A DNA stretch of 64,000 nucleotides from Podarcis muralis (Eukaryota): positions 74,896,001 through 74,960,000 of the forward strand of contig NC_135664.1 in the NCBI RefSeq assembly GCF_964188315.1, read 5' to 3'. The translations under genes were made by a program, and so were the position numbers. This document shows positions 9,721-55,400 of the stretch, one piece after another; position 1 is the first letter of the stretch; every line of letters starts with the position of its first letter. The notes under the pieces were generated by a model. The model saw only the letters and a list, made by a program, of their open reading frames with translations. It was not told where the DNA came from and did not search any database.

Positions 9721-9721
9721 C

Positions 9722-11098: not shown

Positions 11099-11548
11099 AG
11101 TGGTTTATTTTTATTAATTTAAGCCTTATTGAAAATTTTAGGAAGATTTTGCCCAAAAATGGAAAGAAGAAAAAGTCCCAGAGAAAGAAGAATGGATATA
11201 AACTATGCAGAAATATGCAGAGATGGCAAAACTTTCTGGAAAAATAAGAAATCAAGATAACAAACGTTTTTATAAAAGGATGGAAAGGGTTTGTTGAATA
11301 TTTGCAAATAAACTGTAAACAGATAAGAACATTGGCAGGGTTATTGTAATGACCTGCAGTTTTATAAGAGTATGTATTTAAAGAAGATGAATAAATGAGC
11401 AAATTAAGTTAACTTGGAATACGCAGAAAATTAAAAAAATTAATTTCAGGAATGGCAGAAAGAGGGGGAAGGAAGTCGAGTTTTGAAATGTTAAAATGAG
11501 TGTAAAATTATTGAAATGTATAAAACTGGAAATCATAAATAAAATAAT
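11099..11548 (+). mobile_element. L1-clade LINE 3' fragment
   Basis: Degenerate AQKWK...EEW...YAEMAKL...W.GFVEYL and an A-rich aataaaaataataa end. Confidence 0.6.
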
Positions 11549-22881: not shown

Positions 22882-22944
<63 letters not shown>

Positions 22945-25900: not shown

Positions 25901-26022
25901 AGCCGGCCACCACGGTGAAACCAACGACCCAGTGGCAGTACCAGCCCTGGACCACCATGGCACGACCACAGACCAAGTGGCAGTACACGCGCCGGACCAG
26001 GCCCAGTAACTGGGGCAAATAG
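18663..26022 (+). CDS. Acrosin-like serine protease homolog A (456 aa), predicted catalytically inactive (Ser195->Gly). Exons 18663-18736, 20526-20729, 22158-22429, 24233-24381, 25351-26022
   Basis: Five-exon acrosin layout with phases 2,2,1,0. Signal peptide [19 protein letters not shown], two-Cys light chain (TCTRVCG), R|[30 protein letters not shown]|[12 protein letters not shown] and PGVF. No frameshift or premature stop. Confidence 0.9.
18868..19330 (+). mobile_element. Squam3-like tRNA-derived SINE interrupted by a hAT MITE (18935-19186)
   Basis: gagagccagtgtggtgtag head and cctaacctacctcacagggttgttgtgagg body. The MITE has CAGGGGTCAGCAAAC ends and an 8-bp TSD at(a/t)taccc. Other SINE copies at 10208-10345, 20155-20400 and 38722-38800. 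Confidence 0.75.
21325..22115 (+). mobile_element. CR1 LINE 3' fragment in intron 2 of gene A
   Basis: [34 protein letters not shown]...LEKRRLR with an attctgtgattct tail. Confidence 0.9.
22945..23640 (-). mobile_element. L2-clade LINE fragment with a long (AAT)n tail
   Basis: [10 protein letters not shown]...[26 protein letters not shown]...[12 protein letters not shown]. Confidence 0.9.
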
Positions 26023-26422
26023 GCCTTCAACCACAAACACAGACCAGAGGTCTTGGCCACAGGTTCAAAGCACAGCTATGGGCCTGACTCTGATCCCATC
26101 TGTTGCCATGCTGCCGTCACTCAGAGAGATTGCAGCTGGGCTCCGGCACAAATTGATCCTCAGTTCGCCCTTTTGCAACCGTCTTGGGAAGCAAAAGATA
26201 GCAGGCGGCTTCTGGATGATGGTGACTCTATCTGAGCTCATGAAGACCGGCTGTCAGAGCCAGCCTGAGAATGAATTCCCACCCGAAGAACCAGACAAGA
26301 TCCTCAAAGTATCTGGAAGCTCCTCGACTCACGGCACATTCTTGGTGAGAAGACCCTCTTCCTTCTGTGGGTGGGTCCAGCCCCTTCTCGACCGTGGGAA
26401 CTTCTTGTACAAGCACGTTAGA

Positions 26423-29754: not shown

Positions 29755-30535
29755 GGTGGGTGTGGGGGACTCCCTGGTCCTGAATGGGGCTACTCTGCCC
29801 CTGAAGGACCAGGTGCACAGCCTGGGAGTCATTTTGGACTCATAGCTGTCCATGGAGGTGCAGGTCAGTTCTGCATCCAGGGCAGCTGTCTACCAGCTCC
29901 ATCTGGTACGCAGGATGAGACCCTACCTGCCCATGGACTGTCTCACCAGAGTGGTGCATGCTCTAGTTATCTCCCACTTGGAATCCTGCAATGCGCTTTA
30001 CGTGAGGCTACCTTTGAAGGTTACCCGGAAACTGCCATTAATCCAGAATGCGGCATCTAGACTGGTGACTGGGAGCAGCCGCCGAGACCACATAACACCG
30101 GTCTTGAAAGACCTACACTGGCTCTCAGTACTTTTCCGAGCACAATTCAAAGTGTTTGTGCTGACCTTTAAAGCCCTAACCAGCCTCAGCCCAGTATACC
30201 TGAAGGAGCATCTCCACCCCCATTGTCCAGCCCAGACACTGAGGTCCAGATCCAAGGGCCTTCTGGCAGTTCCCTCCTTGCGAGAAGTGAGGTTACAGGG
30301 AAGCAGGCAGAGGGCCTTCTCAGTGGTGGCACCCGCCCTGTGGAACGCCCTCCCATCAGATGTCAAAGAGAAAAACAACTACCAGACTTTTAGAAGACAT
30401 CTGAAGGCAGCCCTGTTTAGGAAAGTTTTTAATATTTTATGCTGTATTGTTTTTAAACTCAATTGGGAGCCACCCAGAGTGGCTGGGGAGACTCAGCCAG
30501 ATGGGCAGGTTATAAATAATAAATTATTATTATAT
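29755..30535 (+). mobile_element. L2-clade LINE 3' fragment (explains the 265-aa ORF at 29852-30649)
   Basis: LQ.IQN.A.RLVTG...LHWL...FKV..LTFKAL...[15 protein letters not shown]. Confidence 0.9.
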
Positions 30536-31871
30536 ATTATTATCATCGGTTTCCTTGGCCTCAGGACACCCCTTTCCCCTTCCTTTATTTCTAAGGCTAA
30601 TGGTTGGAATTTTGGAATTTGGTGCAGTAGACCTGCAACTTATGTGTGATCAACTTTGCACAGGCAGGAGACAAATAAATAAATAAATGGGGAGCTGGTG
30701 GGGGGGGGGGAGACAGTCAGAAGGGGTTGTCTGGGATCTCGTGAGATCTTGCAAAGTCCCAACAAGATCTCTTGCAGCCTTCCCAGAGCCCCGGAAGGCA
30801 GGGATAGTTTACATGTGTGGTTCCAGGGGTCTTCCTGCTTTTGCACGATTTTACAAACTCCTGGAATAATAATCCCACATGTGGGATGTGGGCCTGCTCT
30901 AAATATATCGCAGTGTTGCGCAGAAAGAAAAAGCCCAGTAAGGTTGAAAGGACAAAGGAAACTGGAGGCTTATTTGTCGTGCCAAACAAAGGCATTCTGA
31001 GCACAGGTTTCTCCCACGGCCAAGATGGAGGCACTAACGCACACTGGCTAACTCATGCTGACCTGGAGAAGGAAGAGGGAGGGAGGGCACAAAGTCAGAA
31101 AGGAGGTCAGCTGCTGTGCCAACAAACAGCTGCTGAAAGAGAAGGAACCGGCGAGGGAAGAACAGGTTGCCTTTCTGTCTATCCTCCCACCCAATGGTCC
31201 AGGTAACTTATTGCAACCAGGTAACTTATTTCTCCCAACAAAGGCCACTTCCCATTGGCGCTGCCTGAGGCTGATGGGAGTTGTAGTCCAAAACATCTGG
31301 ATCAGGGAAGGCTGCTCTATATTCTATACCCTAGCCTGGCTCACTGTGCAGGAATCAGAATCTGGTGGAGAATGGATTATGCCACTTTGCATCACAGCTG
31401 GGGGGGAGAACCCTTATTTTAAAATGCTCCTCCGCATGAAAAATTCAGTGCAAAACAGGCAGGGAATGAGCTGAGCTAGAAGACCACTCTTCTGATGTGA
31501 ATTGATTATTATTATTTACATGCAGAGGGTTATTTATACATGGGTGAGCATTTGAAACTGGCACTCTTTACCTCCGAAGCTCTGAAAAGGAAGATTCCCC
31601 CCTCCTACCTCGGAATTCTAACCACTTCATTCTGCTGGGTGTGTCAAACCGATGCCTTTGGTTCTCCTGAGTGCCAGGCAACGTGTCTGACCTTATCTCT
31701 TAGGGTACCCTAGCAAGGGAAAATGCAATGGGTTATATGGGGATTTTCGTACAGACTTGGAGTACCAGAACAGCATGCTGTGTAGAGTTCTGGTCACCTC
31801 ACCCCGAAGAGGATCTTGTAGGGTTGCTAAAGGTTCGGAAAAAGGCCATCAAAACAATTGAGGGGGTGGAA

Positions 31872-32688: not shown

Positions 32689-32814
32689 ATGAGATGGCTG
32701 CTCCTGCTACTCCAGATCCTGGCCACTGTCTGGCCCAGCCGTGCCATAGTTGATACTTGCGAGTAAGTGACGGGAACAGACAAGAGTCCAGCAGGAAGCT
32801 TAATGCTTCTTCAC

Positions 32815-32848
<34 letters not shown>

Positions 32849-35800
32849 GTCGTTTAGTCATGTCCGACTCTTCGTGACCCCCTGGACCAGAGCACGCCAG
32901 GCCCTCCTGTCTTCCACTGCCTCCCGCAGTTTGGTCAAACTCATACTGGTAACTTCGAGAACACTGTCCCACCATCTCGTCCTCTGTCGTCCCCTTCTCC
33001 TTGTGCCCTCCATCTTTCCCAACATCAGGGTCTTTTCCAGGGAGTCTTCTATTCTCATGAGGTGGCCAAAGTCTTGGAGCCTCAGCTTCAGGATCTGTCC
33101 TTCCAGTGAGCACTCGGGGCTGATTTCCTTCAGAATGGAGAGGTCTGATCTTCTTGTGGTCCATGGGACTCTCAAGAGTCTCCTGCAGCGCCATAATTCA
33201 AAAGCATCAATTCTTCGGCGATCAACACTAAGCTTCTTCATTTAGTGCCTAGTTAAACAATGGAACTCTCTCCCACAGGAGGCAGAGATGACCACCAACT
33301 TGGGTGGCTTTCAACTTCATGGAAGAGAGGTCTATTCATGGCTATTAGGAAGGCTCTGCTCTGTCTCCAATGCTGGAGGAAGCAATGCTTCTGAATACTA
33401 GTTGCTGGGAACTGCAGGCGTGGAGAGGGCTCCATGTGCCTGGGTCCTGCTTTCTGGATCCCCTTTGGGGTATCCTGTCCACTGTGAGGACAGGATGATG
33501 GACTAGATGGCCTGAGCCAGCAGGCTCTCTTTGTTTCGTTATGGAAAGGAGGACCCTTTTCTTCAGATCTCCACACTGAGTATCCCATGGGACAAACGTT
33601 AGAGAGGTGATCTCAAGTCAGTAGACGTGGCCATAGCTGCAGAATTATTGTTGTGTGTGTGTGTGTTCAGGGCAACAGAAGGATGTCCTGTGAAGGGAAA
33701 AGACACTCGTGTAGATAATAATAATAATAATAATAATTTATTTATATCCCACCCTCCCCAGCCGAAGCCGGGCTCAGAGCAGCTAACAACAGTAAAGTAA
33801 TACAGTATTCTAAAATCAATTCATTCTAAAATCAGTTCAAATCAAATCAATGGCAACCGTTGGGCTAGAGCTCTGTGAGGATCACCAAAGGAGGGGGTCA
33901 GGCTGTGCCTTGGCCAAAGGCCTGGTGGAACAGCTCTGTCTTGCAGGCAGAAAGATGTCAAGTCCCGCAGGGACTCTTGGGACAGAGCGTTCCACCAGAT
34001 CGGGGCCACGGCCGAAAAAGCCCTGGTTCTGGTTGAGGCCAGCCTAACCTCTCTGTGGCCTGGGACCTCCAAGATGTTTTAGTTTGAAGACCGTAAGTTT
34101 CTCTGTGGGACATACCAGGAGAGGCGGTCCCATAGGTACGAGGGTCCTAGGCCGTATAGGGCTTTAAAGGTTAAAACCAGCACCTTAAACCTGATCCTGT
34201 ACTCCACCAGGAGCCAGTGCAGCTGGTACAGCACCGGGTGAATGTGATACCGCAGTGAGGACCCCATAAAGAGTCTCGCCGCGGCATTCTGCACCCGCTG
34301 GAGTTTCTGGGTCAGTCTCAAGGGCAGCCCCACGTAGAGTACATCCCCACTTTGAGGATGGATGTAGATGGGTGAGCAGCAACAAAGTTTAAGACCTGCA
34401 TGGACCCAAAGGTTCATAGATAAAGGAAGAACAGTGACTAAGGATGGTAGGGAGCAATTTAGGCAGGAACATGGGCCATGCCATTTTCTGCAGTGAAAAC
34501 ATTAGCTGGCACCAGGCAAGATGTTTATTGCATTTACGCATCTTTGATCCAATGAGCTCTAGGGTAGTGCACATGGTTCCCCATCCCGGTCCTCATTTAA
34601 TCCCCACAACAGCCTTGTAGGTTAGGCTGAGTGAGTGTCTGACCCCCAAGGTCACCACCACCAGTGAGCTTCATGGCTGAGAGGGCTAAGACCCTCCCTG
34701 CCCGCGGACTGTCTTGCCAGAGTGGTGCATGCTCGAGTTATCTCTCACTTGGACTACTGCAATGTGCTCTATGTGGGGCTACCTTTGAAGGTGACCCGGA
34801 AACTGCAATTAATCCAGAAAGCGGCAGCTAGACTGGTGACTGGGAGCGGCCACCAGGACCACATAACACCGGTCCTGAGAGATCTGCATTGGCTCCCAGG
34901 ACGTTTCCAAGCACAATTCAAAGTGTTTCTGCTGACCTTGAAAGCCCTAAATGCCCTCGGCCCAGTATACCTGAAGGTGCGTTTCCACCCCCACCATCCA
35001 GCCCAGACACTGAGGTCCAGCTCCAAGGGTTCCCTCATTGCAAGAAGTGAGGTTGCAGGGAACCAGACAGAGGGCCTTCTCAGTAGTGGCGCCCGCCCTG
35101 TGGAACGCCCTCCCTTCAGATGTGAAGGAAATAAGCAGCTATCCTATCTTTAAAAGACATCTGAAGGCAGCCCTGTTCAGGGAAGTTTTTAATATTTAAT
35201 GCTGTATTGTTTTTAACACTCGGTTGGGAGCTGCCCAGAGCGGCTGGGGAAACTCAGCCAGATGGTTGGGGTATAAATAAAAAATTATTATTATTATTAT
35301 TTGAACCCTGCTCTTGCCCCAGTCTGATGCTCTAAGCATTGCACCACACTGCCTCTCGACGTGCAGAACGGACCACTGGGAGCGAGGAAGCACTGACGAC
35401 CTCCTCTCTTTCCAGAGTCTGCGGAAGGCGCCCCTTGGTGCCAGGCCATGGTGGCGGCACAGGGCGGACTACGGGTGGGGCCGACGCCCTGCCGGGGGCC
35501 TGGCCCTGGATCGTCAGCTTGCAGCTGCCAACATTGACGGGGCACAAGCACACCTGCGGAGGCGCCCTCATCACTGCCCGGTGGGTCCTCACAGCCGCCC
35601 ACTGCTTTGGAAGCAAAAAGTAAGCAGGAGCCAAAGTGGTTGGGGGTGGATGAGGCGAAGGAAGATGCCCCCCTGACTGGCCATATGCCCTGACCACTGG
35701 GAGCCGGGCCATGTAGGGGGCAATGGGGCAAAGAGGGGGGCGGGTCCCTAAGTATAAGGAACAAAAAACACAAAGCCACAGGTGATACAATAGAAATACA

Positions 35801-38800
35801 GTGATACCTTGGTTCTTGAACGTAATCCATTCTGGAAGACTGTTTGGCTTCTGAAACGTTTGAAAACAGAGGTGCGGCTTCCCATTGGTTGCAAGAGCTC
35901 CTTGCACTCAGCGGAAGCGACATCGCACATTCGGGTTCCGTAAAATGTTCAAAAACAGAAGCATTTACTTCTGGGTTTTCGGTGTTCGGCTTCCGAAACA
36001 TTCGATAATGGATGCTTTCGGGAACTGAGGTACCACTGTATATATAATCGTATATGTAATTGTGACTTCTGAAACGAAGGTTGGACTAGGATGACCTTAC
36101 ACTACAATTCTACGATTCTATGATTAATCAGTATAAAGGTAAAGGTAAAGGTACCCCTGCCCATACAGGCCAGTCATGTCCGACTCTAGGGTTGTGCGCC
36201 CATCTCACTTAAGAGGCCGGGGGGCCAGCGCTGTCCGAAGACACTTCCGGATCACGTGGCCAGCGTGACAAGCTGCATCTGGAGAGCCAGCGCAGCACAC
36301 GGAAACGCCGTTTACCTTCCCGCTAGTAAGCGGTCCCTATTTATCTACTTGCACCCAGGGGTGCTTTCGAACTGCTAGGTTGGCAGGCGCTGGGACCGAG
36401 CAACGGGAGCGCACCCCGCCGCGGGGATTCGAACCGCCAACCTGACGATCGGCAAGTCCTAGAATCATAGAATCATAGAATCATAGAGTTGGAAGAGACC
36501 ACAAGGGCCATCGAGTCCAACCCCCTGCCAAGTAGGAAACACCATCAGAGCACTCCTGACATATGGCTGTCAAGCCTCTGCTTAAAGACTTCCAAAGAAG
36601 GAGACTCCACCACACTCTTACTGTCAGGAAGTTCTTCCTAATGTTTAGGTGGAATCTTCTTTCTTGTAGTTTGGATCCATTGCTCCGTGTCCGCTTCTCT
36701 GGAGCAGCAGAAAACAACCTTTCTCCCTCCTCTATGTGACATCCTTTTCTATATTTGAACATGGCTATCATATCACCCCTTAACCTCCTCTTCTCCAGGT
36801 TTTACCCACAGCGCCACCCGCGTCTCTGATTAATCAGTATACCTGCATACAATTTAGTATTACAAAATATCCAAACTGTGTCCACTGAATATAAAACAAA
36901 TAAGTTCTCCATGCCTAAAAGTCTGATTACAAAGGAATGCCTTTCTGCCTGGTGCCTGAATATATGTAATGATGGTGCCAGGCGAGCCTCCCTGGGGAGT
37001 GCATTGCACAAAAGGGGAGCCACCACTGAAAAGGCCCTATTCTCCTGTTGCCGCCCTCTGGACCTCCCGGGTCCAGGTCAGTTCATATGGGGAGAGGCAG
37101 TTCTTGGGGTACTGGAGTCCTGAGCTGTGCTCGGCTTCACAGCCTCTTCTGCTCTCCAGGAGCCTTCCGCACTGGCGCGCAGTGATCGGTGCTTCAAAGC
37201 TCTCTGTCCTCGGCTCGGAGGTCCACGTGCGCTACATCAAGCAAGTGGTGGTGCACGAAGCCTACCAGGCGACCACGCAGGTCAATGACGTGGCGCTGAT
37301 GGAGCTGGACCAGCCCATCATCTGCAGCGACTACATCCAGCCGGCCTGCATGCCCGACAGCACCGTCAGCGTGGCCGCTCTGTCTTTCTGCTACATCAGT
37401 GGCTGGGGACTCAGCAAAGCGAAAGGTGAGAGCCTGGCCGAGGCGGCCTCCCTGGCGCACCCTGGCACCCGAGTAGACAAAGGAGGTGGGGAAAGACAGC
37501 TGTGAGGGTCCTCCGGGGACCTTGGCTGGCCCCCTTTTACAGCAGGGATAAGGAACTGTTTGAGGTTGGGAGCCGTAAGCTCTTCTGGGCAACTTTCCAC
37601 GTTTTATTGTAATTTATATTCTGTGTTAGCTGCCCTGAGCCCGGCCCTGGCTGGGGAGGGCGGGGTATAAATAAAAATTCACAATTATGATGATGATGAT
37701 TATATCTGATTGCCTCTGTTCAACACCCCCAAAGTGGCAGTCCCGGCGATGTTGCTCCTTAAGGATCCTGGGGTGTGGTGGGGGCACTTCCTTTCCTCCG
37801 TGGGACTTCGGTTGTAGCTGAAGTTCCAGCATCAAGCTGTCTAGGAACAGGTGGGGGGGGGGGACACACGCACCACGGACTAAAGAGTTGCTCTTCCCCT
37901 GCCAACAGGGGTGGAGGCATCAGACATGATGCAGGAGGCAAAGGTCAATCGCTTTTCCACCCAGACGTGCAACAGCAGCAGCTGGTACAACGGGACCGTA
38001 AGAGAGAACAGCCTCTGCGCAGGGTACGAACAAGGAGGCACCGACAGCTGCCAGGTAAGGTGCCAAGATCCTTGGCAGCTTCAGATATGTGGAACTGGGT
38101 GTCAGATTCGAGGATGCAGGAAACAGCCTTGTTCTGAGGATACAGGGGCCCAGCTCCTTTGGCTCACATCATCATTTGGGGTCATCAGCCCAGAGGCGTA
38201 GTGTTGGGGGGTGTGGCCCCGTGTGCACATTTCTGAGGGGGCACCCCCACGACAGGGTGGCCACAGCTGTGGGGAGGCAAGCCAAGCTGCACCCAGGCTG
38301 GGTCCTCGGGCGCTGGGATGGTGTCTCCCCTTGGCTGGAGCATGCCCTGCCCATGGGCCAACCGAGAGGGGGGGAGGGAGGGAGGGAGGGAGGGAGGGAG
38401 GGAGAAGGGGCTGCCGCCCCCCTCCAGGAGAGGTGAGAGGCACCACCTGGATGGGGAGGGAGAGGCAAGGAGGAGAAGGGCAGCCGTGTTCTCTGGGGCT
38501 CCAGTACAGTGTGGCAGTAGGCAGGTTGGTCCAGTGGGCAGGTGGATGGAGGCAGAGGGCGAGGAGTCTGTTGAAAGCGGGCTTCGTTCACCCTCAGCAC
38601 GGGCCCCGCACGCCCCCAGCGCATGCCCCCCAGCTGACCAGGCAGGGCAGCCCACACCTAGCCACTGCATCACACACACCCCATCTTGTGTGAAAGTGGC
38701 CAAGCACAAGTGGTAAGATCAGAGCCAGTGGTGGTGTAATGGTCAGAGTGTCAGACTAGGACACAGGAGACCAGGGTTTGAATCTTCAGTCAGCCATGGA

Positions 38801-41800
38801 AAATATACCTGTGCCCTATGTTTCTATTTAGTGACCACTCCTCTGTTGCAATACTTAAAGGGTTTGGGGAGCCCCCAATACACTTCAGTTTGCCCTTTAA
38901 AAAAGCCACACTTACTTTGGCCACAGGCAGGCTGAGATGCGGCCTCCAGAGAGCTGAGCATGGGCCAATGTGGCTCTCGCTTGCCACCCACCGCCAACAC
39001 CCTTGACTCAGCCATGGGAGACAGTCAGCATCTCTTCGCCCCGTGCAGCCCTTCAGCTGCCCAGCGCTTCTAGAAACCCCGCAACGCCCCAGTGGACACC
39101 CCTTTCTTCCCTCCTTTTGAGACAAATGCAATCGGTTGCTCACCCCCAACTTCTTTTGCATGTCTTGTCGCTGCAGGGAGACAGTGGGAGCCCCCTCATG
39201 TGCAAGGAAGAGGCATCTGAGCCGTTTTGGGTGATTGGAGTCACCAGCTGGGGCCAAGGCTGTGGCAAAGCACACCGCCCGGGAGTCTACGCCGCCACAC
39301 AGCCCTTGTATGCCTGGGTGAAAGGGTGGGCAGGACCCATGCCCCAGCCCCCACCCACCCCAGAGCCTGCCCCTTCGGCACCCCGGAAGCTGAAGACACC
39401 TCACGTCACTATCTATTTCCATCCTCCGACAAACCCTTTCCATTGGTCTGAGACCAGCAGCAAGCCCACAGCCTCATCGCAGCCGAAGCCACAAGAGGAG
39501 ACCACATCCACAAGCACATCTCAACCCACGCCCGAAACCAAGCCTGAAACTACATCCCAGCCCACGTCTGAAACCACATCCCAACCCACGTCTGAAACCA
39601 AGCCTGAAACCCCATCTCACCCCAAACCCACACCAGAAACCAAGCCTGAAACCACAACTCAACCCAAACCCACACCAGAAACCAAGCCTGAAACCACAAC
39701 TCAACCCGAAACCAAGCCCGAAACCAAGCCTGAAACCACAACTCACCCCAAACCCACACCAGAAACCAAGCCTGAAACCACATCTCAACCCAAACCCACA
39801 CCAGAAACCAAGCCTGAAACCACAACTCACCCCAAACCCACACCAGAAACCAAGCCTGAAACCACAACTCACCCCAAACCCACACCAGAAACCAAGCCTG
39901 AAACCACATCTCAACCCAAACCCAAACCCAGAACTCCAACCAAGCCCACAATCACAATTCATTTCAGGCCTGCAACTCAAACCAAGCCTGAAACCCCATC
40001 TCATCCCAAACCCACGTCAACACCTCCAACCAAGCCCACCATCACAATTCTGTTGAGGCCTGCAACCCCAACTCAAACCAAGCCTGAAACCCAATCTCAA
40101 CCCAAACCTACGCCGACACCTCCAACCAAGCCCACCATCACAATTCATTTGAGGCCTGCAACCCCACCCAAACTAAGACCCCCACTTCCACCGCAGGCAA
40201 AGCCAGAACACATACCTCAACCTGAGCCAGAGACCCCTCCTCTGCCAATGCCCAAAGTCCCACCTCAGGCTAAGATACCAACCACACCTGAACCAAATAT
40301 CACAGCCTCACCTCAAAGGAAGCCAGAAACCACAACTCAACCAAAGATCACACCTCCAACAGACCCAGAAATCATACCTCAGCCAAAGCCCACATCCCCT
40401 CCTCAAACAGATCCAGATGGCATACCTGCATCTCAGCCACCTCCCAACCCCCCAACTCCACCTCAAGCTGAGAACAGCACTACGCCGGAAGTGAAGCCCC
40501 CGTCCCTACCTCAAACTGTGTCCAACACCTCACTTGAACCCAATAATGAAACACAACCTGAGATGGAGCTAGATGTATCACCTGAGCATGAGCATGAACA
40601 TGAGCACAAGCCTGGAGGACCAAATGTGTATGAGCATGAACATGAACATGAGCATGAGCATGAGCATGAACATGAGCATGAGCATGAGCATGAACATGAG
40701 CATGAACATGAGCATGAACATGGGACAGGAGAGCCTTATGCATATGAGTACGAGCATGAGTATGAGGCTGGAGGGCCACCTGAGCATGAAACCCCACTGG
40801 AACCCACGACGGAAGCGCCATCGGAACCTGTGACAGAAGCCCCATCAACACCCACAACAGAAGCGACATCGAAACCCACAACAAAAGTCCCATCAAAACC
40901 TACAACCGAAGCTCCATCAACACCCACAGATGCCCCATCAAAACCTACAACCGAAGCTCCATCAACACCCACAGAAGTCCCATCAAAACCCACAACTGAA
41001 GCTCCATCAAAACCCACAACCGAAGCTCCATCAACACCCACAACTGAAGCTCCATCAACACCCACAGAAGCCCCATCAAAACCCACAACCGAAGCTCCAT
41101 CAACACCCACTGAAGCCCCATCAAAACCCACAACTGAAGCTCCATCAACACTCACAGAAGTCCCAGCAAAACCCACAACTGAAGCTCCATCAAAACCCAC
41201 AACCGAAGCCCCATCAAAACCCACAACTGAAGCTCCATCAACAGCCACAGAAGCCCCATCAAAGCCCACAACTGAAGCTCCATCAACAGCCACTGAAGCC
41301 CCATCAAAACCCACAACCGAAGCTCCATCAACAGCCACAGAAGCCCCATCAAAGCCCACAACTGAAGCTCCATCAACACTCACAGAAGTCCCAGCAAAAC
41401 CCACAACCGAAGCTCCATCAACACCCACAACAGAAGCCCCATCAACACCCACAGAAGTCCCATCAAAACCCACAACCGAAGCTCCATCAGCAACCACAGT
41501 AGCCCCATCAAAACTCACAACCGAAGCTCCATCAACAACCACAGAAGCCCCATCAAAACCCACGATGGAAGCCCCATCAACACCCACAGAAGTCCCATCG
41601 AAACCCACAACCGAAGCTCCATCAACACCCACAGAAGTCCCAACAAAACCCACAACCGAAGCTCCATCAACACCCACAGAAGTCCCATCGAAACCCACAA
41701 CCGAAGCTCCATCAACACCCACAGAAGTCCCAACAAAACCCACAACTGAAGCCCCATCAACACCCACAGAAGTCCCATCGAAACCCACAACCGAAGCTCC

Positions 41801-42761
41801 ATCAACACCCACAGAAGTCCCAACAAAACCCACAACTGAAGCCCCATCAACACCCACAGAAGTCCCATCGAAACCCACAACCGAAGCTCCATCAACACCC
41901 ACAGAAGTCCCAACAAAACCCACAACTGAAGCCCCATCAACACCCACAGAAGTCCCATCGAAACCCACAACCGAAGCTCCATCAACACCCACAGAAGTCC
42001 CAACAAAACCCACAACTGAAGCCCCATCAACACCCACAGAAGTCCCATCGAAACCCACAACCGAAGCTCCATCAACACCCACAGAAGTCCCAACAAAACC
42101 CACAACCGAAGCTCCATCAACACCCACAGGAGTCCCATCGAAACCCACGATGGAAGCCCCATCAACACCCACAGAAGTCCCAACAAAACCCACGACCGAA
42201 GCTCCATCAACACCCACAGGAGTCCCATCGAAACCCACGATGGAAGCCCCATCAACACCCACAGAAGTCCCAACAAAACCCACGACCGAAGCTCCATCAA
42301 CACCCACAGGAGTCCCATCAAAACCCACGATGGAAGCCCCATCAACACCCACAGAAGTCCCAACAAAACCCACGACCGAAGCCCCATCAACACCCGCAGA
42401 AGTCCCATCAAAACCCACAACCCAAGCTCCATCAACACCCACAGAAGCCCCATCAAAACCCACAACGGAAGCCCCACCAGAACCCGCTACGAAAGCCCCA
42501 GAACCTCAGCCCAAGCCAGAAACTCCAGCTGCCCCCAAGCCCCAGAAAAATACCAATACCACAGTGGCCTCTTTCTTCAGACTGCTTCAGAAATTCTTGC
42601 ATGCTGCCAGGGAGGAGAAGTTGACTGAGCTGGAACTCAAGAAAAAAGGTGCAGATTCTCTCCCGGATTCAGGAGCGGAGAAAAGGAATCCTTGCGCGCA
42701 GGCGAAGAACTCCAAAGCGCCCCTGGCACGTGAGTGCCTCACCAAAGTCAGTAGGTCTTAG
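32689..42761 (+). CDS. ACR: Acrosin-like serine protease B (1424 aa) with intact triad, TTGG activation site and giant mucin-like tail. Exons 32689-32762, 35416-35619, 37160-37425, 37909-38054, 39177-42761
   Basis: Signal peptide [19 protein letters not shown], light chain [32 protein letters not shown]|GDSGSPLMC. Phases 2,2,1,0; exons 1 and 2 are the same length as in paralog A (74 and 204 nt). It sits convergent to RABL2, as human ACR does. The ACR symbol rests on similarity and synteny; which paralog is the true ortholog is unresolved. Confidence 0.88.
32814..33226 (-). mobile_element. Bov-B LINE 3' fragment, 50 nt into intron 1 of gene B
   Basis: [18 protein letters not shown]...GVTKSRT with a (CAA)n tail. 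Confidence 0.9.
33735..34345 (-). mobile_element. Second L2-clade subfamily fragment
   Basis: [23 protein letters not shown]...[17 protein letters not shown]. Same family as 60735-61440. Confidence 0.85.
34685..35280 (+). mobile_element. L2-clade LINE 3' fragment
   Basis: [25 protein letters not shown]. Confidence 0.9.
36136..36826 (-). mobile_element. Sauria SINE interrupted by a CR1 3' fragment (~36462-36799)
   Basis: 15-bp TSD tgattaatcagtata at 36121 and 36827. A CR1 (catagaat)n tail lies inside the SINE head. Confidence 0.9.
39500..40160 (+). repeat. Coding tandem repeat, 39-bp/13-aa unit (PETKPETT[S/T][Q/H]PKPT), followed by degenerate PTKPTITI units
   Basis: Repeated cacaccagaaaccaagcctgaaaccaca... 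units in frame in the terminal exon of gene B. Confidence 0.9.
40584..40790 (+). repeat. Coding (GAG/GAA-CAT)n repeat: (EH)4 plus (EH)15 plus degenerate YEYEHEYE
   Basis: 40584-40607 encodes 4 EH pairs; 40632-40721 is 90 nt and encodes 15 EH pairs. Confidence 0.95.
40800..42480 (+). repeat. Coding minisatellite TEAPS[T/K]PT / TEVP[S/T]KPT (21-24 bp subunits, 45-bp and 90-bp higher-order units)
   Basis: Sequence lines 41701 and 41881 are identical, as are 41761 and 41941. The array stays in frame throughout. Confidence 0.95.
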
Positions 42762-42830
42762 CAGAGTGACTGCCAAATAGTACCCCTAAGAGGAACTCTT
42801 GCGTCAGATTTTGTATTGAATCCAGAAGGA

Positions 42831-42836
42831 AATAAA
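42831..42836 (+). terminator. Poly(A) signal of acrosin-like B
   Basis: AATAAA 70 nt after the TAG at 42761, which supports one 3.6-kb terminal exon. Confidence 0.7.
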
Positions 42837-43059
42837 CTTTTATGTTTGTTACCTGTGTTTGTTACCTGCGTCTTGCCACACACAACCACCCTCCTGAGGC
42901 CAGTTCTGCTCAGCACCACACTCTGGTGCTGTTGGCCACCTGAAAAACTGGCTGCTTGTATTCTTCCTCGCTGTATTGTAAATTGTAAGGTGTGTGTGTG
43001 GGGGAATCCTACGATTGTGTGCAAGCAGACAGGAGGAAACAGAGGCAGCCACTGGGGTT

Positions 43060-43742
43060 GTCTTTTACGACCGCTAGGTGGTGACCCCACTGGGCGCGGT
43101 AATCCAGTCAGGGGAAAAGGGAGGCAGACTATGTTTAGGGCACCTTTTCTAGCCCCTCTCCCTTTTCGGGGTGAGCAGTCTGGATCCTAAAAAGGGCTGC
43201 TCAGTCATGGATGCAGCTGCCGAGCTGCTCAACTGCCTCGTTCCTCGAGTCCGAACGACTGAATCTGTATCCACTGCCCATGTGCCGGTTCATGACTAGG
43301 GGCTTCCAGATTTCACGATCCTGCCCCCGTTACCATTTGCCGATCGCCATGGGACTTTTGGGGTTTGGGTTGGGTTTTTGGAAGACGCCTGTGCGTGAAT
43401 TAGTTTTATGTGTGTAGATCAGTGCACGCTGACCAACGCACAGTCTTCGCAGTAGGTTCTCTGTTCTGATGGCATGGAGTAGCCACAACAAACCGATAGA
43501 TTCCTATCTGCTGCAGCCTTGACCCGCCTACACAGGCGTAGTAACATACTGCTTATTATCATCCGCCTGTTCTGCCGTTGAGGACTTCTTGGACCACTCT
43601 TTGTCTAGCTCCTTCCCTTTGACCTCACCGCCTTGGGTGACCCTGCTGGGAGTGCGAGATTCCCGACGGCTACGCTCACAAGGGTCATAGGAACTTGCAA
43701 GCCCACTTACCACAACAAGGTGATGATCCAGCGAGTGGGTGT
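43060..43742 (-). mobile_element. RTE-clade LINE 5' UTR fragment
   Basis: The minus strand begins ...atcaccttgttgtggtaagtgggcttgc...atgacc...agggtcacccaaggcgg, resembling the recalled RTE/Bov-B 5' leader. Confidence 0.55.
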
Positions 43743-46458: not shown

Positions 46459-49400
46459 TCAGGTTGACGGGGGGTTTTCTTCTGGGCTGTTCTCCTCTTT
46501 GTCAGTCGAGTCCTCCCCCTTCTTCTCCAGTTCGAAATTCTGAAAGAAGACAAGAGAAAGTTGGAACAGCAAAACATCAGAGAAAAAGGCCAGTCCACCT
46601 CTTGGGGGGCTCCGGCATGGAATCTTTCCTTCCAAGTCCTTCTCAGTTCCAACAGCCACTACAGGCAGCGGCAATTGAGGCTTCTGCTGTCCCAGTTTGC
46701 GTCTGCCTATCTGAGTTTGTCCATAAAGAAGGCTGATCGCCAAAGAATGGATGATTTTGAATTATGGTGCTGGAGGAGACTCTTGAGAGTCCCATGGACT
46801 GCCAGAAGATCAAACCTATCCATTCTGAAGGAAATCAGCCGAGTGCTCACTGGAAGGACAGATCCTGAAGCTGAGGCTCCAAGACTTTGGCCACCTCATG
46901 AGAAGACTCCCTGGAAAAGACCCTGATGTTGGGAAAGATGGAGGGCACAAGGAGAAGGGGACGACAGAGGACGAGTTGGTTGGACAGTGTTCTCAAAGCT
47001 ACCAGCATGAGTTTGACCAAACTGTGGGAGGCGGTGGAGGACAGGAGGGCCTGGCGTGCTCTGGTCCAGGGGGTCACGAAGAGCCGGACACGACTGAACA
47101 ACTAAACAACACCAATGTGAGTTTGAGATTGTTTTCACTGTATTTAAATTACTGTTCTTGTATTAATTTTTTTTGCAAAGTGCCAATTGAACACAGGGCA
47201 TACACTAACCCTTCCCAGTAAGGAGGCAGCCACTGTTGCCATCACCCTGTTCCTCTTGCCGCAGCACCTGGCTTTTCTGTTGCAGAAGAAACAAGGGCCT
47301 TGCTGCTCTGGCTGTTTTTTATTGCTCGATCCCTGACAGTAGCTGCTCTCACCTGCAGCCAGAAGCGAGAGTAGCAGGGAAGAGCAGGTATGGCCACAGA
47401 GGAAAAGGAAAGCAGCCGGAGCCTGTAGCTGCTCAAAGCGGAAGTGCGGCAGGGGTGGGACTGGCAGCTGGGCCGATGAGCCAAGGCACGGGGTGAAAAG
47501 GGGCTCTTCAGCCGCAGCCAGCTGTAGTGACTGTCAAAACCAGAGGTCACTACAGGCTTGCGGGGGCTTCAAAGCAGTTCAATTAAAAGGCAGTTCAGTT
47601 GCTGTGATCCCTGCATTGCTTCGGTTTGCTCTAGATGACCCCCCCTGGATCCCTTCCAACTCTATAAAGTGCTGGGTTCTATGCTCTTCCAAAGGAATAC
47701 GGCGCAAGTCTCCACAAGCTTAGGTGCCTCACAAGGACAGGGTGCGGGAACACACTGGGGAGATTTGCTCTTACTTCCAGTTCCTTCAAGACTTCATCCA
47801 TAAAGTCTTCTGAATTCTGTTTGTAGGCCACAGCCAGCTTGATGGCATCGTTGAAGACCTGGTGGGAGAGGAAGGGAGACCACTGAAGAGGTAAGAAGGT
47901 GGGCTCTGGGTTTCTCCCACCCCTTTTTCCACCGGAGGAAAGCCGATTCCACCACCCATCAGCTCCTCCCCCCAGGAAGCCTGCCAGCCACCGGTCCTGC
48001 CTCCCTCCAAGGCGAAAGCTCTCTCCTACCTTCACCACATTGGTGCCATCTGCAGCAGACACAAAATAGAAGGGAAGGTTGAACTTCCGCGGAAAGCTGA
48101 AGCCTTTCTGAGTCACCTTCATGTCGGCTGGAGGAGCAAAAGAGGAGGTCATTGCTCAAGGAGCCATTGTGGGGAAGGCACACTACCTAGGTAGCGCCCG
48201 CTTGATCATTTAAAAAAGCAAGGCATAAAAGTTTAATAAAGCACTCATCTTTCTCCCTGTGATTGCTATTGTTTAAAATACAAAGTCTAGTACAATGATG
48301 TTGAAAAACTGCTCCATGAATAGGGGGCAGGAAGGAAGGTGGTTAACGTCACTAATGCTAGCCACTCAGTGCTGTGCCCAACCAGCTTAAGCAGAACTAC
48401 CTTCCTCCACTGGCTTCGACCCAGGAGAGAAAGCAGATTATTTTCATTACTGCATTCAGAAAAGAACTGGCTTTCTGGGCAGGATTGACGCCAGCGGAGC
48501 AGTGGGAGCTGGTCAACTCGGGCAAATGGGGCACTGCCCTGCCAATCAGTTCACCCTCAGCCAGCTGCCTGTCAAGGATTCTGAAGTCCAGAGGCTGAGT
48601 CCTAAGTTGAAAACCAACAAGTTAAAGTGGCCTGACATTTCCCTACACTCTTTTTGCCCCCCCCCCTTCTCTTTGATATGAGGGATTTCTCTGTTCCCCT
48701 CTTTAAGTGTGTGCTGCAGGGGAGCACGGCAGGGCCTTTGCAGTGGTGGCACCCCATGTGCAATAGCCTCCCTTGCTGCAAGATGTCACAAGAGTGCCTG
48801 GGGTAAAATTGTCTATCAAAAACTTCACTCTTGTGGTTTATCACAACAGCTACTCACTTTGGGTTTTAGTAAAGTACTCACTTTGGGTTTTAGTAAAGTA
48901 AACAGTCTAATTTGTCAGCTCCTATGATAACGAGCATCAGAACAACTTGGCCACAATAAGGAAATTCTGCCCGTGGTAAGACTATTTTCCACCTTCCCAT
49001 TTCGACTCTCTTGGCACCCTATCTGCATAACCTAGTGATTTTAAAATACAGACGCGCTTTTGCTCTCACAAGATTGAATGTATTGCCCTCGGCTGTACTT
49101 GAGGGACGATTCCAACAGATTCCTCATGAAAAATGCTTCTGTCCCTGTGGAGATGGCAGTACCGATTCGGTGGCACATGCCCTTTTGGCTTGAACTCTTT
49201 ATAAAGACTTGAGAAATGAGGTTATCACCCCTCTTTTATCGTCCATTCTGGGTTGCCTGACCACTGCCACAGCATCCTTTCTCTTGGCAGATCAAGAGAA
49301 GCAGGCGACAGCAAATGTTGCAAGGTTTTTATCTGGGGCAGTTGGAATAAGATCCACTATTTGACCATTGATTCAAAACCCTAAATTTTATTTTATATAA

Positions 49401-52400
49401 TTGACTTTGTATTTCTGTTCTTTGTATATTGTATTGTTGTTTCATTGCTATGACTGATGGCTGACGCAAATAAAGATTCATTCATTCATTCATTCATTCA
49501 TTCATTCATTCATTCAATGGCCCTACCGTAGGAAAGCCTGCCTGGCCACCACACGGTGTGCCTTGTGGCAGCCAGCAGGAATTTCTGCTTGTCTTTGCTA
49601 TGCGGGAAGGGAAGGGATTCTCTGACCACTGAACTCATCCTGCTGCCCAACAGATGCTCCTAATTCATGTGGTTGCTGAGGCTTGTGAGCTTTGCTTTTA
49701 CAACTACAGGCCAGCACACATCTGATCTCTACCCCAGTGATCCTCCAGAGCTTCAAGGAGACCCACCGTCGATTTTGTTGGCAACCACAATGCAAGGGAT
49801 CTGGGGGCGGAATTCCCGCAGCTCCTTGTACCAACTGCTCAGGTTCTTGTAGGTGACCTTTCTCTGGATGTCAAAGACCTGGCAAGAGAGAGGGGAAGAG
49901 CCCATTGCAGACACAGGTGGCACTCTGGCCTGAAATAGTCAAGAATCCAGTCCAAACCCCGGTAATGTAGGAATCACAGCTGAAGAATCCATTAAAGATG
50001 GCTATCCAACTTCTGCTTAAAAACCTCCAAGGGAGGAGAGTCCACCACCTTCCCAGGAAGCCCGTTCCACCATTGAATGACTCTTACAGCCAAAGTTTTT
50101 GGTGTTTCGCAACTTTGACCTGTTGCAGGACCTTAGCCAGACCTTAGCAGAGCATATGCAGCATTCCAGAAAGCAACCAGTTGCAGGCAGGATGGACGAA
50201 GCAGGAACAAAATGCTGCTACCAGTAACTTGTTTACTTAGAGGTGTTTATTATTTACAGCAGACTTCAAGTTACTATGTACAAGAACAGAACAGATACGG
50301 ATCTTAACTAGCTCTCTCTTAACGAATGCCAAACGACTCCACACTGACCAACAACCTTTCCAGTTGGTTAGGTAATAAGTCATCATGCCTGTGTGAGACC
50401 TCAATCAATGGTAGAGATGTATCTAAGGTCTCATATCTCCAGGCAGAATTACTCCTCTGCTCAGTACCCTTGGCTTTCGGCCAACTCTTAATTGACTTCG
50501 TGTGAAGCTGCACATGGAAGAAAAATCGCAGCACCCCCTCACAGCTCACACAGAGCAATTAACTTCTGAGCACATACAAAGTATTTCATCCAACTTTGCA
50601 AACCCAAACATTCACACATTTGCTTGTTTTTTACAAACAACAACGGTTTCGTCAAGATGTCAGCAATGTTTGACGTCCCCAAAAGTTTGACCTAATTATG
50701 GAATCACAGAGCTGGAAGGGACCCTGAAGATCATCTTGACCAATCTCCTGCAATGCAGAAATTTGTACCCTCCCTATACAGGGATCAACTCGACCTAATG
50801 TTTAGTTGGAATCTCCCTTCTTGCAATTTGAAGCCACTGGTTTGGGTTGCCCCCCTCAAGAGCAGCAGCAGAGAGGGTAGGACCCGAACCAGTAACTTGA
50901 GGGGCTGGCTGGGGGGCGGGGGCGGCAGAATTGCAGGGTCCAAATGCCTCCAGGGAAAAGCATGCTCTGCGGAAGCCAGCAGGAATGCCGAAGGCCTCCA
51001 GTCTTAAATGAGGTCGTACTTTGCAGCATGCAAAGAGTGATCTCCTGCCCCACGGCTGACCAAGACAAACCACACTGCAACAGACCCACAGCTGGGGCAA
51101 CAGATGCCCCCTCCCAGCAACTGAGCTCTTGGGAGCTCCTTATTTATTCAATTTATATTTCACTCTTCCCTCCCAAAGGAGCTCACGTCGGCAAAGTGAT
51201 TTTACTGCAGTATGGTTTCATGTTTTTATATTCTTGTAAACCACTGTGCCATATTTATATGATACAGCGGTATATAAATATTTTATATAAATAAATAAGA
51301 TAAAAACACCAGTGATAAAACACGTAAAAATATATCTGAAAACACTTTAAAACAATCACAGTCTCCCATCCAATGGTTTTAGGACTGCCATCAAACACAT
51401 GGGTAAAGAGGAATGTTTAAAAATTATTCCCAGGAGTCAATATTACAGGAGGCAACCTCACCAGGGAGCCGTGGTTCCCAATGTGGGGCACACGCCCCAC
51501 AGGGGGGCAATTAAATTTTTAGGGGGGGGGCAACTCAAGAACGAGTCATTAACAGTGAATGGCATTTAGGCTTCCTCCACGTGAATATGAGTTTGCTTTT
51601 TGAATAACAAGAATTATACATCATGGGGGGGGGCAGAATTTTAGAGATGCTTAAGGGACGCAGGTGGCGCTGTGGGTTAAACCACAGAGCCTAGGACTTG
51701 CCAATCAGAAGGTTGGCGGTTTGAATCCCCACAACGGGGTGAGCTCCCGTTGCTCGGTCCCTGCTCCTGCCAACCTAGCAGTTCGAAAGCACGTCAAAGT
51801 GCAAGTAGATAAATAGGTACCGCTCCGGCGGGAAAGTAAACGGCGTTTCTGTGCGCTGCTCTGGTTCACCAGAAGCGGCTTAGTCATGCTGGCCACATGA
51901 CCCGGAAGCTGTACGCCGGCTCCCTCGGCCAGTAAAGCGAGATGAGCGCCACAACCCCAGAGTCGGCCACGACTGGACCTAATGGTCAGGGGTCCCTTTA
52001 CCTTTTAAGTGGGGCATGGCCAAAAAAAGGTTGGAAACCACTGCTGGGGAGGAAATTGCACCCATGGAAGGCTCTGACACGGAAAGGGCTGATAAGCCCA
52101 CCTCCAGTGTCAAAGGTTTCTTCAGATACCACTTTCCTCAAGCACTCAGGCTTCATGGTCGTAACGACCAGATCCCGTTTCCGAAACGGGAGTCCGTTCA
52201 ACTCCTGGAACTGTTTGAAAACTTCCTGCACTTAATTGAAAGCCGCTTCGGACGTTCGGATTCCAAAAAACGTTTGCAAACCGGGACACTCACTTCCGGG
52301 TTTGCGGCGCCCGGGAGCAAATTTGTTCGGTACCACTGTACCTTTTTATAACGGCAGCCAAGATTCCCCCCCCTTGGACGGGCAAAATTCTGCACAGGAT

Positions 52401-55400
52401 TTCCTACTGTAGAATCCCGGCTCTGCAGAATACTCACATCCCATAACACGAGTCGCATACGGAAGTCTAGGCTGACCCAGAACAAGCAGGGGGAAAGACG
52501 CAGCTCCGTGGGAGAGCTTGGCGAAGCATACACAGCACAGCCCGAGCCAAAGCCTCGCCCGAACTTCTCAAAGCCAGACCAGGCTTCCCCGCTTTCAGCC
52601 TGCCATCCCTGGTGCCCCCTCTGCAGCCCCCGCCCAAAAGGCAGCCCGCCCACTTACCATGATGCAGGCGTGAGCCTTGTAGTAGTAGGAAGCATGCATG
52701 CTCTGGAAGCGCTCCTGCCCAGCCGTGTCCCAGAAGTCTGAAAAGCAGGAATGGCCCACGGCTGCATTAACCACAGCGGGGAAGAAAGCTCCACTTCTAG
52801 CTTACCCAGGGGTTTAGAAAGTTGATGCAGGGTTTAATCTGCTCCCAGCCTATCTTAACTTCTAAAGTTAGTGCTGAGGTTGCTTCGTGATAATTCTATC
52901 GCTTTACTTTTCTTGGAAACCGTAGGTTTTCTGATGATCAAAGTGGTGTGCAAATGAATAAAGGAATAAATCTCTAGATCAGCCTTTCTCAACCTGTGGG
53001 TCCCCAGATGTTGTTGGACTACAACTCCCATCATCCCTGAGCTCTGGCCTTGCTAGCTAGGGGTGATGGGAGTTGTAGTTTAACAACATCTGGGGACCCA
53101 TAGGCTGAGAAAGGCTGCTCTAGATACAAGCACACTCTGGTCAGAGAACGCTTCTTGAGAGCTTAGCAGGTGAAGGAGGATGTAAAAACTCTTCCTCCAT
53201 CACCAAGGGCAACAGGAAAACAGATGCTGTCTGTGATCTGCCTGACTTATATTTTCCTGGCCCCAGCTAGCCCACCCCTGGTACCCCACTACTGGGTGGG
53301 GTGGGGGTGGGGGAAAGGAGGAAGCGAAGAAAATTTAATATCTTACTGAACTTCTGTATTTACTCCCTGGTGAAGTGCCTGAGTAAATCAAAACTCACTG
53401 GGTGTGAAACTTTTTCTCTTACCTGCTTTGCTTTCTGTGCCCCCCCCAAAAAAAAACAGTTGGAGGATGGATGGCGGCTAACAGATTGAGGTTGAATCCT
53501 GACAAGACAGAAGTACTGTTTTGGGGAGATAGGGGGCGGGCAGGTGTGGGGGGCTCCCTGGTCCTGAATGAGGCAACTGTGCCCCCGAAGGACCAAGTGC
53601 GCAGCCTGGGAGTCATTTTGGACTCCCAGGTGTCCATAGAGGGGCAGATCAGTTCTGTGTCCAGAGCAGCTGCCTACCAGCTCCATCTGGTACGCAGGAT
53701 GAGACCCTCCCTGCCCACAGACTGACTCACCAAAGTGGGGCATGCTCTGGTTATCTCCTGCTTGGACTACTGCATTGCGCTCTATGTGGGGCTACCTTTG
53801 AAGCTGACCCGGAAACTACAACTAATCCAGAATGCGGCAGCTAGACTGGTGACTGGGAGCGGCCGCCGAGACCATATAACACCGGTCCTGAAAGACCTAC
53901 ATTAGCTCCTTGTACGTTTCTGAGCACAATTCAAAGGGTTGGTGCTGACCTTGAAAACACTAAACGGCCTCAGCCCAGTATACCTGAAGGAGCGTCTCCA
54001 CCCCAATTGTTTTTCCCGGACACCAAGGTCCAGCTCCGAGGGCCTTCTGACAGTTCCCTCCCTGAGAGAAGTGAGATTACAGGGAACCAGGTAGAGGGCC
54101 TTCTCAGTGGTGGCACCTGCCCTGTGGAACGCCCTCCCACCAGATGTCAAAGGAATAAACAACTACCTGACATTTAGAAGACATCTGAAGGAAGCCCTGT
54201 TCAGGGAAGTTTTTTAATGACTGATGTTTTAACGTATTTTTAATCTTCTGTTGGAAGCCGCCCTGAGTGGCTGGGGGAAACCCAGCCGGATGGGCAGGGT
54301 ATAAGTAATAAATTATTATTATATTATTATTATTATGCTAAATACATCATAAATGAGCCACCATAGCTGCTAGATGACCATGAACATTTGTGTCCCAAGC
54401 TTTTTAGACTTGTCTAAACGTGGGTGGCGCTGTGGGTTAAACCACAGAGCCTAGGGCTTGCCGATCAAAAGGTTGGCAGTTCGAATCCCCGCAACGGGGT
54501 GAGCTCCCGTTGCTCAGTCCCTGCTCCTGCCAACGTAGCAGTTTGAAAGCACGTCAAAGTGCAAGTAGATAAATAGGTACCACTCTGGTGGGAAGGTAAA
54601 CGGCGTTTCCGTGCGCTGCTCTGGTTCACCAGAAGTGGCTTAGCCATGCTGGCCACATGAGCCGGAAGCTGTACGCCGGCTCCCTCGGCCAATAAAGCGA
54701 GATGAGCGCCACAACCCCAGAGTCGGCCACGACTGGACCTAATGGTCAGGGGTCCCTTTACCTTTACCCATGTACGAAACCCAAGGGGCATACTGGTTGC
54801 CACATGTCATTCCCATCCCCAGCTCTCCTACTACCCCACTAAATTTTGCATGAATACACTAGGTGATTTCCTGATCTGACAGGGGCAAGCAGCTTCGCCC
54901 AGAGCTGGTGCCATTCCGAAAGGGAGTGGGAGAGACCCCAGTTCCCGAGTCCCACGGGGCCCCAAGCTGCCCTGCCCAGGAAGGTTCTCACCCACGAGGA
55001 TCGTCTTGCCATCCACGGTGGCTGTATGCTTGTAGAGTGTCAGGGCGAAGGTGGACAGCTGGTGAGGCTTGCTGCGGGTGCGAGTCAAGGTGCCTTTCGG
55101 GCAATGTCACTGTTTTTTAATCTAACCGCGGGCGCGCCAGAGAAACTTGATTTCAGACAGCCATCATTTCACCATTAAGCAACGGATGCAGCCGTCAGCT
55201 ACCTGCCAGGACACCTCCCTTCCCTTTTATTGCTTATTTATTTTATTTATCTACCACTCTACATCGAAAGATTTCAGGGCGGTTCACGGAAAAAATACAG
55301 GATAAAAACAAGTAAGTGAAACAAAACAGGAAAACAATAATGCCCCCCCTCCCACACACACATTTAAAAGGCTGTAGAATATTAATCCGCCAAAGCCCTG

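Follow-up and report, generated by a model that had tools for sequence, protein, structure and literature searches.

A long, repeat-rich and probably translated tail on an acrosin-like protease of Podarcis muralis

The acrosin-like gene and its protease part

The window considered here is a stretch of 64,000 nucleotides (nt) of the Podarcis muralis genome (NCBI RefSeq assembly GCF_964188315.1, contig NC_135664.1, positions 74,896,001 to 74,960,000 of the forward strand), and all coordinates are counted from its first letter. It carries on the + strand an acrosin-like gene, here called acrosin-like B, in which the protease is followed by a tail about four times the size of the enzyme; this tail is probably real, transcribed and translated. 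Acrosin is the classic protease of sperm, and its C-terminal tail tends to be regarded as a short and disposable pro-segment, which in mammalian proacrosin comprises roughly 100-130 amino acids (aa).

Five exons separated by four GT..AG introns were delimited by tblastn with squamate acrosins and by splice sites. The summed exon lengths give a coding sequence of 4,275 nt, or 1,424 codons, the exons having been searched singly and never as a joined protein. Exon 1 (32689..32762), located by tblastn with the acrosin N-termini of Python and Varanus, contains the start codon, a hydrophobic N-terminus and the first cysteine of the light chain, and ends at a GTAAGT donor; its product appears signal-like by eye, and this N-terminus is conserved in Python, Pogona and Varanus. 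Exon 2 (35416..35619), bounded by its splice sites, encodes VCGRRPL, the activation site R|TTGG and the catalytic His (TAAHC), and corresponds to positions 2-46 of Pfam Trypsin. Exon 3 (37160..37425; Trypsin positions 50-141) encodes the catalytic Asp (NDVAL), and exon 4 (37909..38054; Trypsin positions 135-177) ends in GGTDSCQ and holds Asp189 of the S1 pocket. Exon 5 (39177..42761) is a single open frame of 1,194 codons, encoding the catalytic Ser, the tail and the stop codon. Its first 50 codons (39177..39326; GDSGSPLMC...YAWVK; Trypsin positions 177-220) complete the protease, and the remaining 1,144 aa are tail. An open reading frame at 38970..42761 (+) of 1,263 aa encloses this exon, its 5' portion being intron; the exon start was set at 39177 by a canonical acceptor, tcgctgcag followed by GGAGACAGT. 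The first-pass annotation, made from the sequence alone, had described an acrosin with a tail of about 1140 aa in one 3.6-kb exon, and the gene model bears this out, with Pfam Trypsin directly upstream of the tail.

Assignment to the acrosins is supported by several features. Together the four exon pieces cover positions 2-220 of PF00089 (Trypsin), with E-values from 4.7e-14 to 3.5e-6. The catalytic triad His57/Asp102/Ser195 and Asp189 are kept, in TAAHC (exon 2), NDVAL (exon 3) and GTDSCQGDSGSP (exons 4 and 5). The closest PDB matches are to beta-acrosin, 1fiz for exon 2 and 1fiw for exon 3, by a narrow margin. An acrosin-type light chain with two cysteines is present, DTCEVCG aligning to the Python and Varanus N-termini by tblastn. 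The organisation is that of mammalian proacrosin (ACR), which likewise joins a light chain to an S1 protease and has five exons, the last of which completes the protease and adds a Pro-rich extension of low complexity. The Podarcis gene differs from it in a tail of about 1,144 aa that is rich in Thr, Ser, Glu and Lys besides Pro, in the tandem arrays of that tail, and in its activation site.

In acrosin-like B of the window the canonical zymogen activation site R|(I/V)VGG is replaced by R|TTGG (35465-35479), as it is in Zootoca. Elsewhere the site reads Q|VVSS (Python), L|EGS (Pogona) and R|GGT (Sceloporus); Elgaria (R|IVGG) and Varanus (R|VVGG) alone keep the canonical form. These degenerate sites raise the alternative that the protease cannot leave the zymogen state or has no catalytic activity, the product being mainly a structural or adhesive glycoprotein of the acrosomal matrix, and the neighbouring upstream paralogue has already lost its catalytic Ser. 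Nevertheless, His, Asp, Ser and Asp189 are retained in every species seen, which argues for continued selection on catalysis, and a locked or dead enzyme is considered somewhat unlikely.

Layout of the tail

Pro makes up 24% and Ser+Thr 31% of the tail, which is acidic (net charge -48, isoelectric point 5.2) and, without any added sugar, would have a mass of about 121 kDa. The mucin-like composition and the uninterrupted frame with successive repeat zones reported in the first-pass annotation were both recovered, every named zone being found by translation and by Tandem Repeats Finder (TRF). All parts lie on the + strand. A linker (39327..39524) contains a stretch of 13 residues conserved in squamates, the motif PRKLKT with cleavable Lys/Arg sites, and HVTIYFHP. 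It is followed by a PETK zone (39525..39941) of 14-aa (42-bp) tandem units, composed of 32% Thr, 27% Pro, 14% Glu and 13% Lys (TRF 39583-39933, 8.3 copies, 91% matches), and by three units of about 32 aa (39942..40181), each with the hydrophobic motif PTKPTITI(H/L)(F/L)RP (TRF rows of 90/96 bp, 39805-40177). A Pro/Gln-rich zone (40182..40580) is non-repetitive and holds four N-x-S/T sequons. The His-Glu tract (40581..40796) is 36% Glu and 29% His, with 21 His residues and a net charge of -25, and is encoded by (TGAGCA)n (TRF 40583-40722).

The main array (40797..42476) consists of about 37 units of 15 aa, of the TEAPS/TEVPT type and ending in (T/S)KPTT, with 39% Ser+Thr and 25% Pro (TRF 45/90 bp, 40833-42485, 36.5 copies of 45 bp). 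The C-terminal part (42477..42758) has a short Pro/Lys-rich lead-in, a predicted helix TVAxFFxLLQxFL (42558-42614), the motif KLTELEL and a Cys-X13-Cys loop. A TAG stop codon (42759..42761) is followed, 71 nt further on, by an AATAAA polyadenylation signal (42832..42837) and then a GT-rich stretch; the close AATAAA had also been noted in the first reading. A possible donor to another exon, GTGAGT at 42730, was rejected, as it reads GC in the related species, the RNA contig continues past the stop, and the later residues align with the Python C-terminus.

The arrays thus form four tandem-repeat zones, and from their sequence they are young tandem expansions of minisatellite type. At the core of the main array lie four identical 90-bp units (41700-42059), within a run of 353 nt of exact 90-bp periodicity. 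This core bears on the alternative that the architecture is real and that the array length, on which the 1,144 aa depend, is in part a product of the assembly or represents a single allele of a variable number tandem repeat (VNTR) with length polymorphism. DNA contigs carrying the same species label as the window (X8) provide the relevant check. Unique segments and array flanks are matched almost letter for letter by these independent contigs (X8 records 16-22), and the window sequence is free of any N. The short-read contigs leave 41782-42143 uncovered, and the exact copy number is provisional; a related species, moreover, differs by 6-nt indels in the PETK zone. Thus, of the assembly artefact that the first-pass annotation had allowed for, the unique parts and flanks are cleared and 41782-42143, which the X8 contigs do not span, is not. 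With a different copy number the tail would be longer or shorter and its nature would be the same. A length that is partly an artefact, or that of one allele, is considered somewhat unlikely. DNA depth in X8 is even (27-38) across the protease and the unique parts of the tail, and the tail is therefore single-copy. The tail as a separate gene was also considered and was rejected: its unique segments are single-copy in DNA and it is without a signal peptide of its own.

Coding constraint on the tail

Not one of the 1,144 codons of the tail is a stop in the coding frame. The other + frames contain 9 and 62 stops, and base composition predicts about 28.5, so that the openness of the coding frame is more than chance. 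Every array period (42, 90/96, 6 and 45/90 bp) is a multiple of 3. Further data come from an RNA run of 74 million letters (X1) from a related lizard species, organism A. Between X1 and the window there are three indels, each of 6 nt, and of the 34 differences in exon 5, 20 affect the third position of a codon (binomial p = 0.002); these 34 are a partial sample, 30 more over the whole compared stretch not being listed. The codon changes comprise 16 synonymous and 16 non-synonymous, with none leading to a stop.

Tails of other squamate acrosins

Acrosin-like proteins of Python, Elgaria, Pogona, Sceloporus undulatus and Zootoca vivipara share the conserved linker and the C-terminal module with Podarcis. 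In the coding frame, tblastn matches the last ~70 residues of the tail, down to PC-X13-C, to the ends of the acrosin-like proteins of Python (E 2e-8) and Pogona (E 4e-9). When a profile built from the module was run against 1.84 billion representatives, it matched Sceloporus and Elgaria, and no bird or mammal was matched in that set. Two further profile matches were judged spurious, one as a repeat protein by its sequence and the other by its weak score alone, a word search with the module returned nothing, and the ESM Atlas yielded no usable match to it. AlphaFold2 predicts one helix in the module, at residues 8-26 (TVASFF...AAREE; block pLDDT, the predicted per-residue confidence, ~86), the remainder being of low confidence. 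In human proacrosin the poly-Pro stretch is followed by a helix-like motif of a similar kind, a putative homologue of the module, the profile of which matched no mammal.

The last exons were read directly in the fetched loci of Python, Elgaria and Pogona. In Python bivittatus the exon-5 frame from GDSGGP is 614 aa long and the tail 564 aa, with tandem repeats of 81 bp and 102 bp (27- and 34-aa units). In Elgaria multicarinata a frame of 502 aa gives a tail of 452 aa with about 25 copies of TETHHSTPPQ, and in Pogona vitticeps (LOC110070565) a frame of 418 aa gives a tail of 368 aa with no tandem array. None of these three tails has an in-frame stop, whereas their other frames have 3-42. The Sceloporus gene holds a 5-kb block of N. 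Because the last-exon tails of Python, Elgaria and Pogona are unbroken, a long Ser/Thr/Pro-rich tail is, at the level of sequence, a squamate-wide feature whose repeat units are lineage-specific. The Podarcis tail is the longest of the four measured, the others being 2-3 times shorter. Motifs of TEAP type adjoin the C-terminal module in Pogona and Elgaria, at the same position as the Podarcis array, and the 14-aa unit of the PETK zone also occurs in the Zootoca model.

This comparison of tail lengths, which the first-pass annotation had proposed, bears on its view that a minisatellite expansion created the tail. The arrays do appear to be young tandem expansions; the long tail itself is not confined to lacertids, as those of Python, Elgaria and Pogona are long too. 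The genes are orthologous and occupy corresponding positions: in Python, Pogona, Elgaria and Sceloporus, as in Podarcis, the downstream neighbour is an Arf-like gene, with NDK beyond it in Python and Pogona.

An alternating hydrophobic motif was also seen within the Podarcis tail, as HVTIYFHP (39400-39425) and three times as PTITI(H/L)(F/L)RP (39960-40170). Similar motifs are found in Python (PTIKIVLQ, KVELLLQ, LEIEILSQ and QLVIILQ; fetched locus L002, ~10950-12200) and Sceloporus (TMTIHIKLE; tail in L004). This recurrent motif may be a beta-strand or an interaction motif inside a disordered tail.

Transcription of the tail and public gene models

Transcripts in X1 run from the protease into the tail. 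An 848-nt contig has the end of exon 3 joined to 37907/9, crosses a joint at 38051->39174 (GT..AG, equal to 38054|39177) and continues to 39550, within the tail. Depth is zero in intron 4 and reaches 76-134 on contigs in unique parts of the tail (40079-40688, at a depth of 127; 40689-40880; 42424-42780), the last of which runs through the stop codon. Every zone of the tail is represented in the X1 contigs, and RNA word depth is high across most of the repeat arrays. The bins at 41782-42143 are empty in X1 RNA and in X8 DNA alike, and as the DNA is empty there too, the gap is a mapping effect of identical units and not splicing. Downstream, X1 depth is zero at 42868-43048; the last X1 contig ends at 42780 and a contig of the low-depth run X5 reaches 42909, which brackets the 3' end of the transcript between 42780 and ~42910. 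Only tail and 3'-end pieces of the gene were seen in X5.

Public gene models describe a different product. Of the two for Podarcis, XP_028601213 (432 aa) takes its first exon from 26198-26344, behind the upstream paralogue, and stops near 39560, and XP_077791757 (484 aa) splices 39566->40196 (631 nt) from a weak donor (AC|GTCTGA), which causes a frameshift and a nonsense end at 40492. Both keep intron sequence behind exon 3 (37426-37493) and lack the signal-like first exon (32689-32762). A similar truncation, near the equivalent of 39560, is seen in the 400-aa model of Zootoca. Models for Python (422 aa) and Elgaria (476 aa) drop the repeats as in-frame "introns", although these stretches are actually open, and the Sceloporus model also skips sequence, in a gene that contains an N block. 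Coding repeats are cut short or left out in five of the six models checked (Podarcis x2, Zootoca, Python, Elgaria and Sceloporus). No relative of 657-2,090 aa came up when the opening 110 aa of exon 5 served as query in a word search, because public models cut the tail; with a 400-aa frame the short public models were returned. Proteomic searches and scans of evolutionary rate on these genes are consequently run on the wrong proteins.

These models would be correct if the repeats were spliced out as an internal intron (an "exitron"), leaving a short acrosin of 400-480 aa, as the truncated or spliced models of Podarcis and Zootoca and the in-frame skips of Python and Elgaria would have it. The two Podarcis models, however, disagree with each other, and the intron of XP_077791757 combines its frameshift with a weak donor. 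The X1 contig 40079-40688 crosses the acceptor of that intron unspliced, and no joint of this kind is listed. The arrays have high RNA word depth where intron 4 has none. In addition, sequence that is always spliced out would not be expected to stay open for 1,144, 564, 452 and 368 codons in four species, nor to show indels in multiples of 3 and a third-position bias. Removal of the repeats by splicing is, on this evidence, highly unlikely. The first-pass annotation had recognised that transcripts might splice out the repeats or end before them; in X1 exon 4 is joined to the tail, and there is no repeat-removing splice joint among those listed.

A number of observations count against a translated, mucin-like tail and temper the confidence placed in it. 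X1 derives from a relative and not from P. muralis, and no tissue is on its record. A raw RNA-seq run with the same species label as the window (X16) has zero reads on the gene, which fits tissue-restricted expression and proves nothing. The X1 contigs break within the arrays, and no single molecule was seen across 39177-42761. X1 depth is about 6-fold higher on the tail contigs (127-134) than on the protease contig (21.8), while DNA depth is even; the difference could be due to 3' bias or to an internal transcript start. Four NCBI models end or splice within the tail. Inside the arrays, variation from unit to unit has no significant third-position excess (5/5/8 variable columns in TEAPS units, p = 0.22; the PETK units have too few variants). 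The replacement of R|IVGG by R|TTGG calls into question activation of the protease and, with it, self-clipping of the tail. Finally, the argument for glycosylation comes from composition and that for translation from sequence and RNA. Taken with these points, it is still regarded as probable that the tail of this acrosin-like protease is real and is both transcribed and translated.

Composition, glycosylation and possible function

The Podarcis tail consists of tandem repeats rich in Pro, Thr and Ser, as judged by composition and TRF, which is the hallmark of the Pro/Thr/Ser (PTS) domains of mucins. With the mucin-like domain of zonadhesin and with lubricin (PRG4), it shares Pro/Thr/Ser tandem units, location in one large exon, near-identical central units resembling a VNTR and, presumably, entry into the secretory pathway. 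It differs from these proteins in having no sequence homology to them and no MAM, VWD or SEA domain; Pfam finds Trypsin only in the exon 5 product, so that the MAM/VWD/EGF mosaic of zonadhesin is absent and the likeness is compositional, with glycosylation predicted. The unit TEAPSKPT presumably resembles units of zonadhesin and lubricin. Full-text literature searches returned nothing on squamate acrosin tails of this kind. What is known is a proacrosin with a C-terminal pro-segment, and what is new is the enlargement of that segment into a mucin-like domain.

Whether composition of this kind leads to mucin-type glycosylation is evenly balanced. The tail might instead be translated and remain an unglycosylated, disordered and acidic pro-segment that extends the Pro-rich tail of mammals, with metal or pH sensing by the His-Glu zone and its 21 His residues as its main job. 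According to titles in the reference list of PMC7827414, the C-terminal extension of mammalian proacrosin is Pro-rich and is removed on activation, during maturation of the zymogen; the same article describes a mucin-like domain in zonadhesin, which is likewise a sperm protein. In Pogona the tail is richer in Pro and Glu, with 23% Ser+Thr and no tandem repeats, as would suit a plain pro-segment. Against such a reading, the main array is 39% Ser+Thr, mostly flanked by Pro, and the signal-type N-terminus suggests passage along the Golgi-derived route to the acrosome. A tail devoid of mucin character is accordingly thought unlikely.

If the mucin-like tail is translated, pre-proacrosin would enter the endoplasmic reticulum and Golgi of the spermatid en route to the acrosome. 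Its arrays would be densely modified with O-linked N-acetylgalactosamine (O-GalNAc) into an extended bottle-brush, a proposal made because 274 of the 352 Ser/Thr in the tail have Pro at -1, +1 or +3. The arrays should also resist acrosin's own trypsin-like cutting, because upstream of the conserved module 74 of 87 Lys/Arg precede Pro. Sites not followed by Pro are concentrated in three places, the linker (PRKLKT), the Pro/Gln zone and, with 16 sites, the C-terminal module, and cuts would be possible in the linker and the module. From resistant arrays and clustered cleavable sites in the linker, it is suggested that the tail could act as a very large C-terminal pro-segment or as a matrix tether, which would hold the zymogen in the acrosomal matrix and then be removed by a cut in the linker. 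The C-terminal processing of mammalian proacrosin would thus recur here on a larger scale, and such a role is put forward tentatively. Individual units would turn over within each lineage by slippage or unequal exchange, while the frame, the composition and the C-terminal module would be kept.

A more far-reaching speculation is that squamate acrosins are protease-mucin chimeras with hypervariable, lineage-specific VNTRs under sexual selection, in which the glycosylated stalk, and not the protease with its activation site decaying in several lineages, would work in interactions of sperm with the egg coat or oviduct and contribute to species-specific fertilisation. On that view, which is quite unlikely as it stands, a class of protease-mucins would be hidden because annotation pipelines splice the repeats out. 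In any case, squamate acrosin tails, ranging from 368 to 1,144 aa and differing in their units, offer a tractable system for studying how fast-evolving, disordered and possibly glycosylated domains are grafted onto reproductive enzymes.

Neighbouring genes and other features

Upstream of the gene lies a tandem paralogue, acrosin-like A (20530-26019, +), which reads GDGGSP for GDSGGP, the catalytic Ser being lost, and which has a different tail, containing Tyr/Gly/Arg. A dead paralogue occupies the same upstream position in Pogona (fetched locus L001:5395-6105; GDGGGP) and Sceloporus (L004:2869-3606). Exons of an Arf/Arl-like small GTPase are found downstream on the minus strand (47769-55103). 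Two related open reading frame fragments derived from transposons (LHWLP..FRAQFKV..LKAALF) are located at 29846-30646 and 34643-35196, one of them within intron 1. Two fragments of high-copy interspersed repeats, with a DNA word depth of 8,000-11,000 in X8 and also present in the RNA runs, lie at 38705-38885 and 43049-43200, one in intron 4 and the other just downstream of the gene. Intron 4 additionally carries an indel polymorphism at 38211-38324, where an X8 DNA contig omits 112 nt and has CCT instead.

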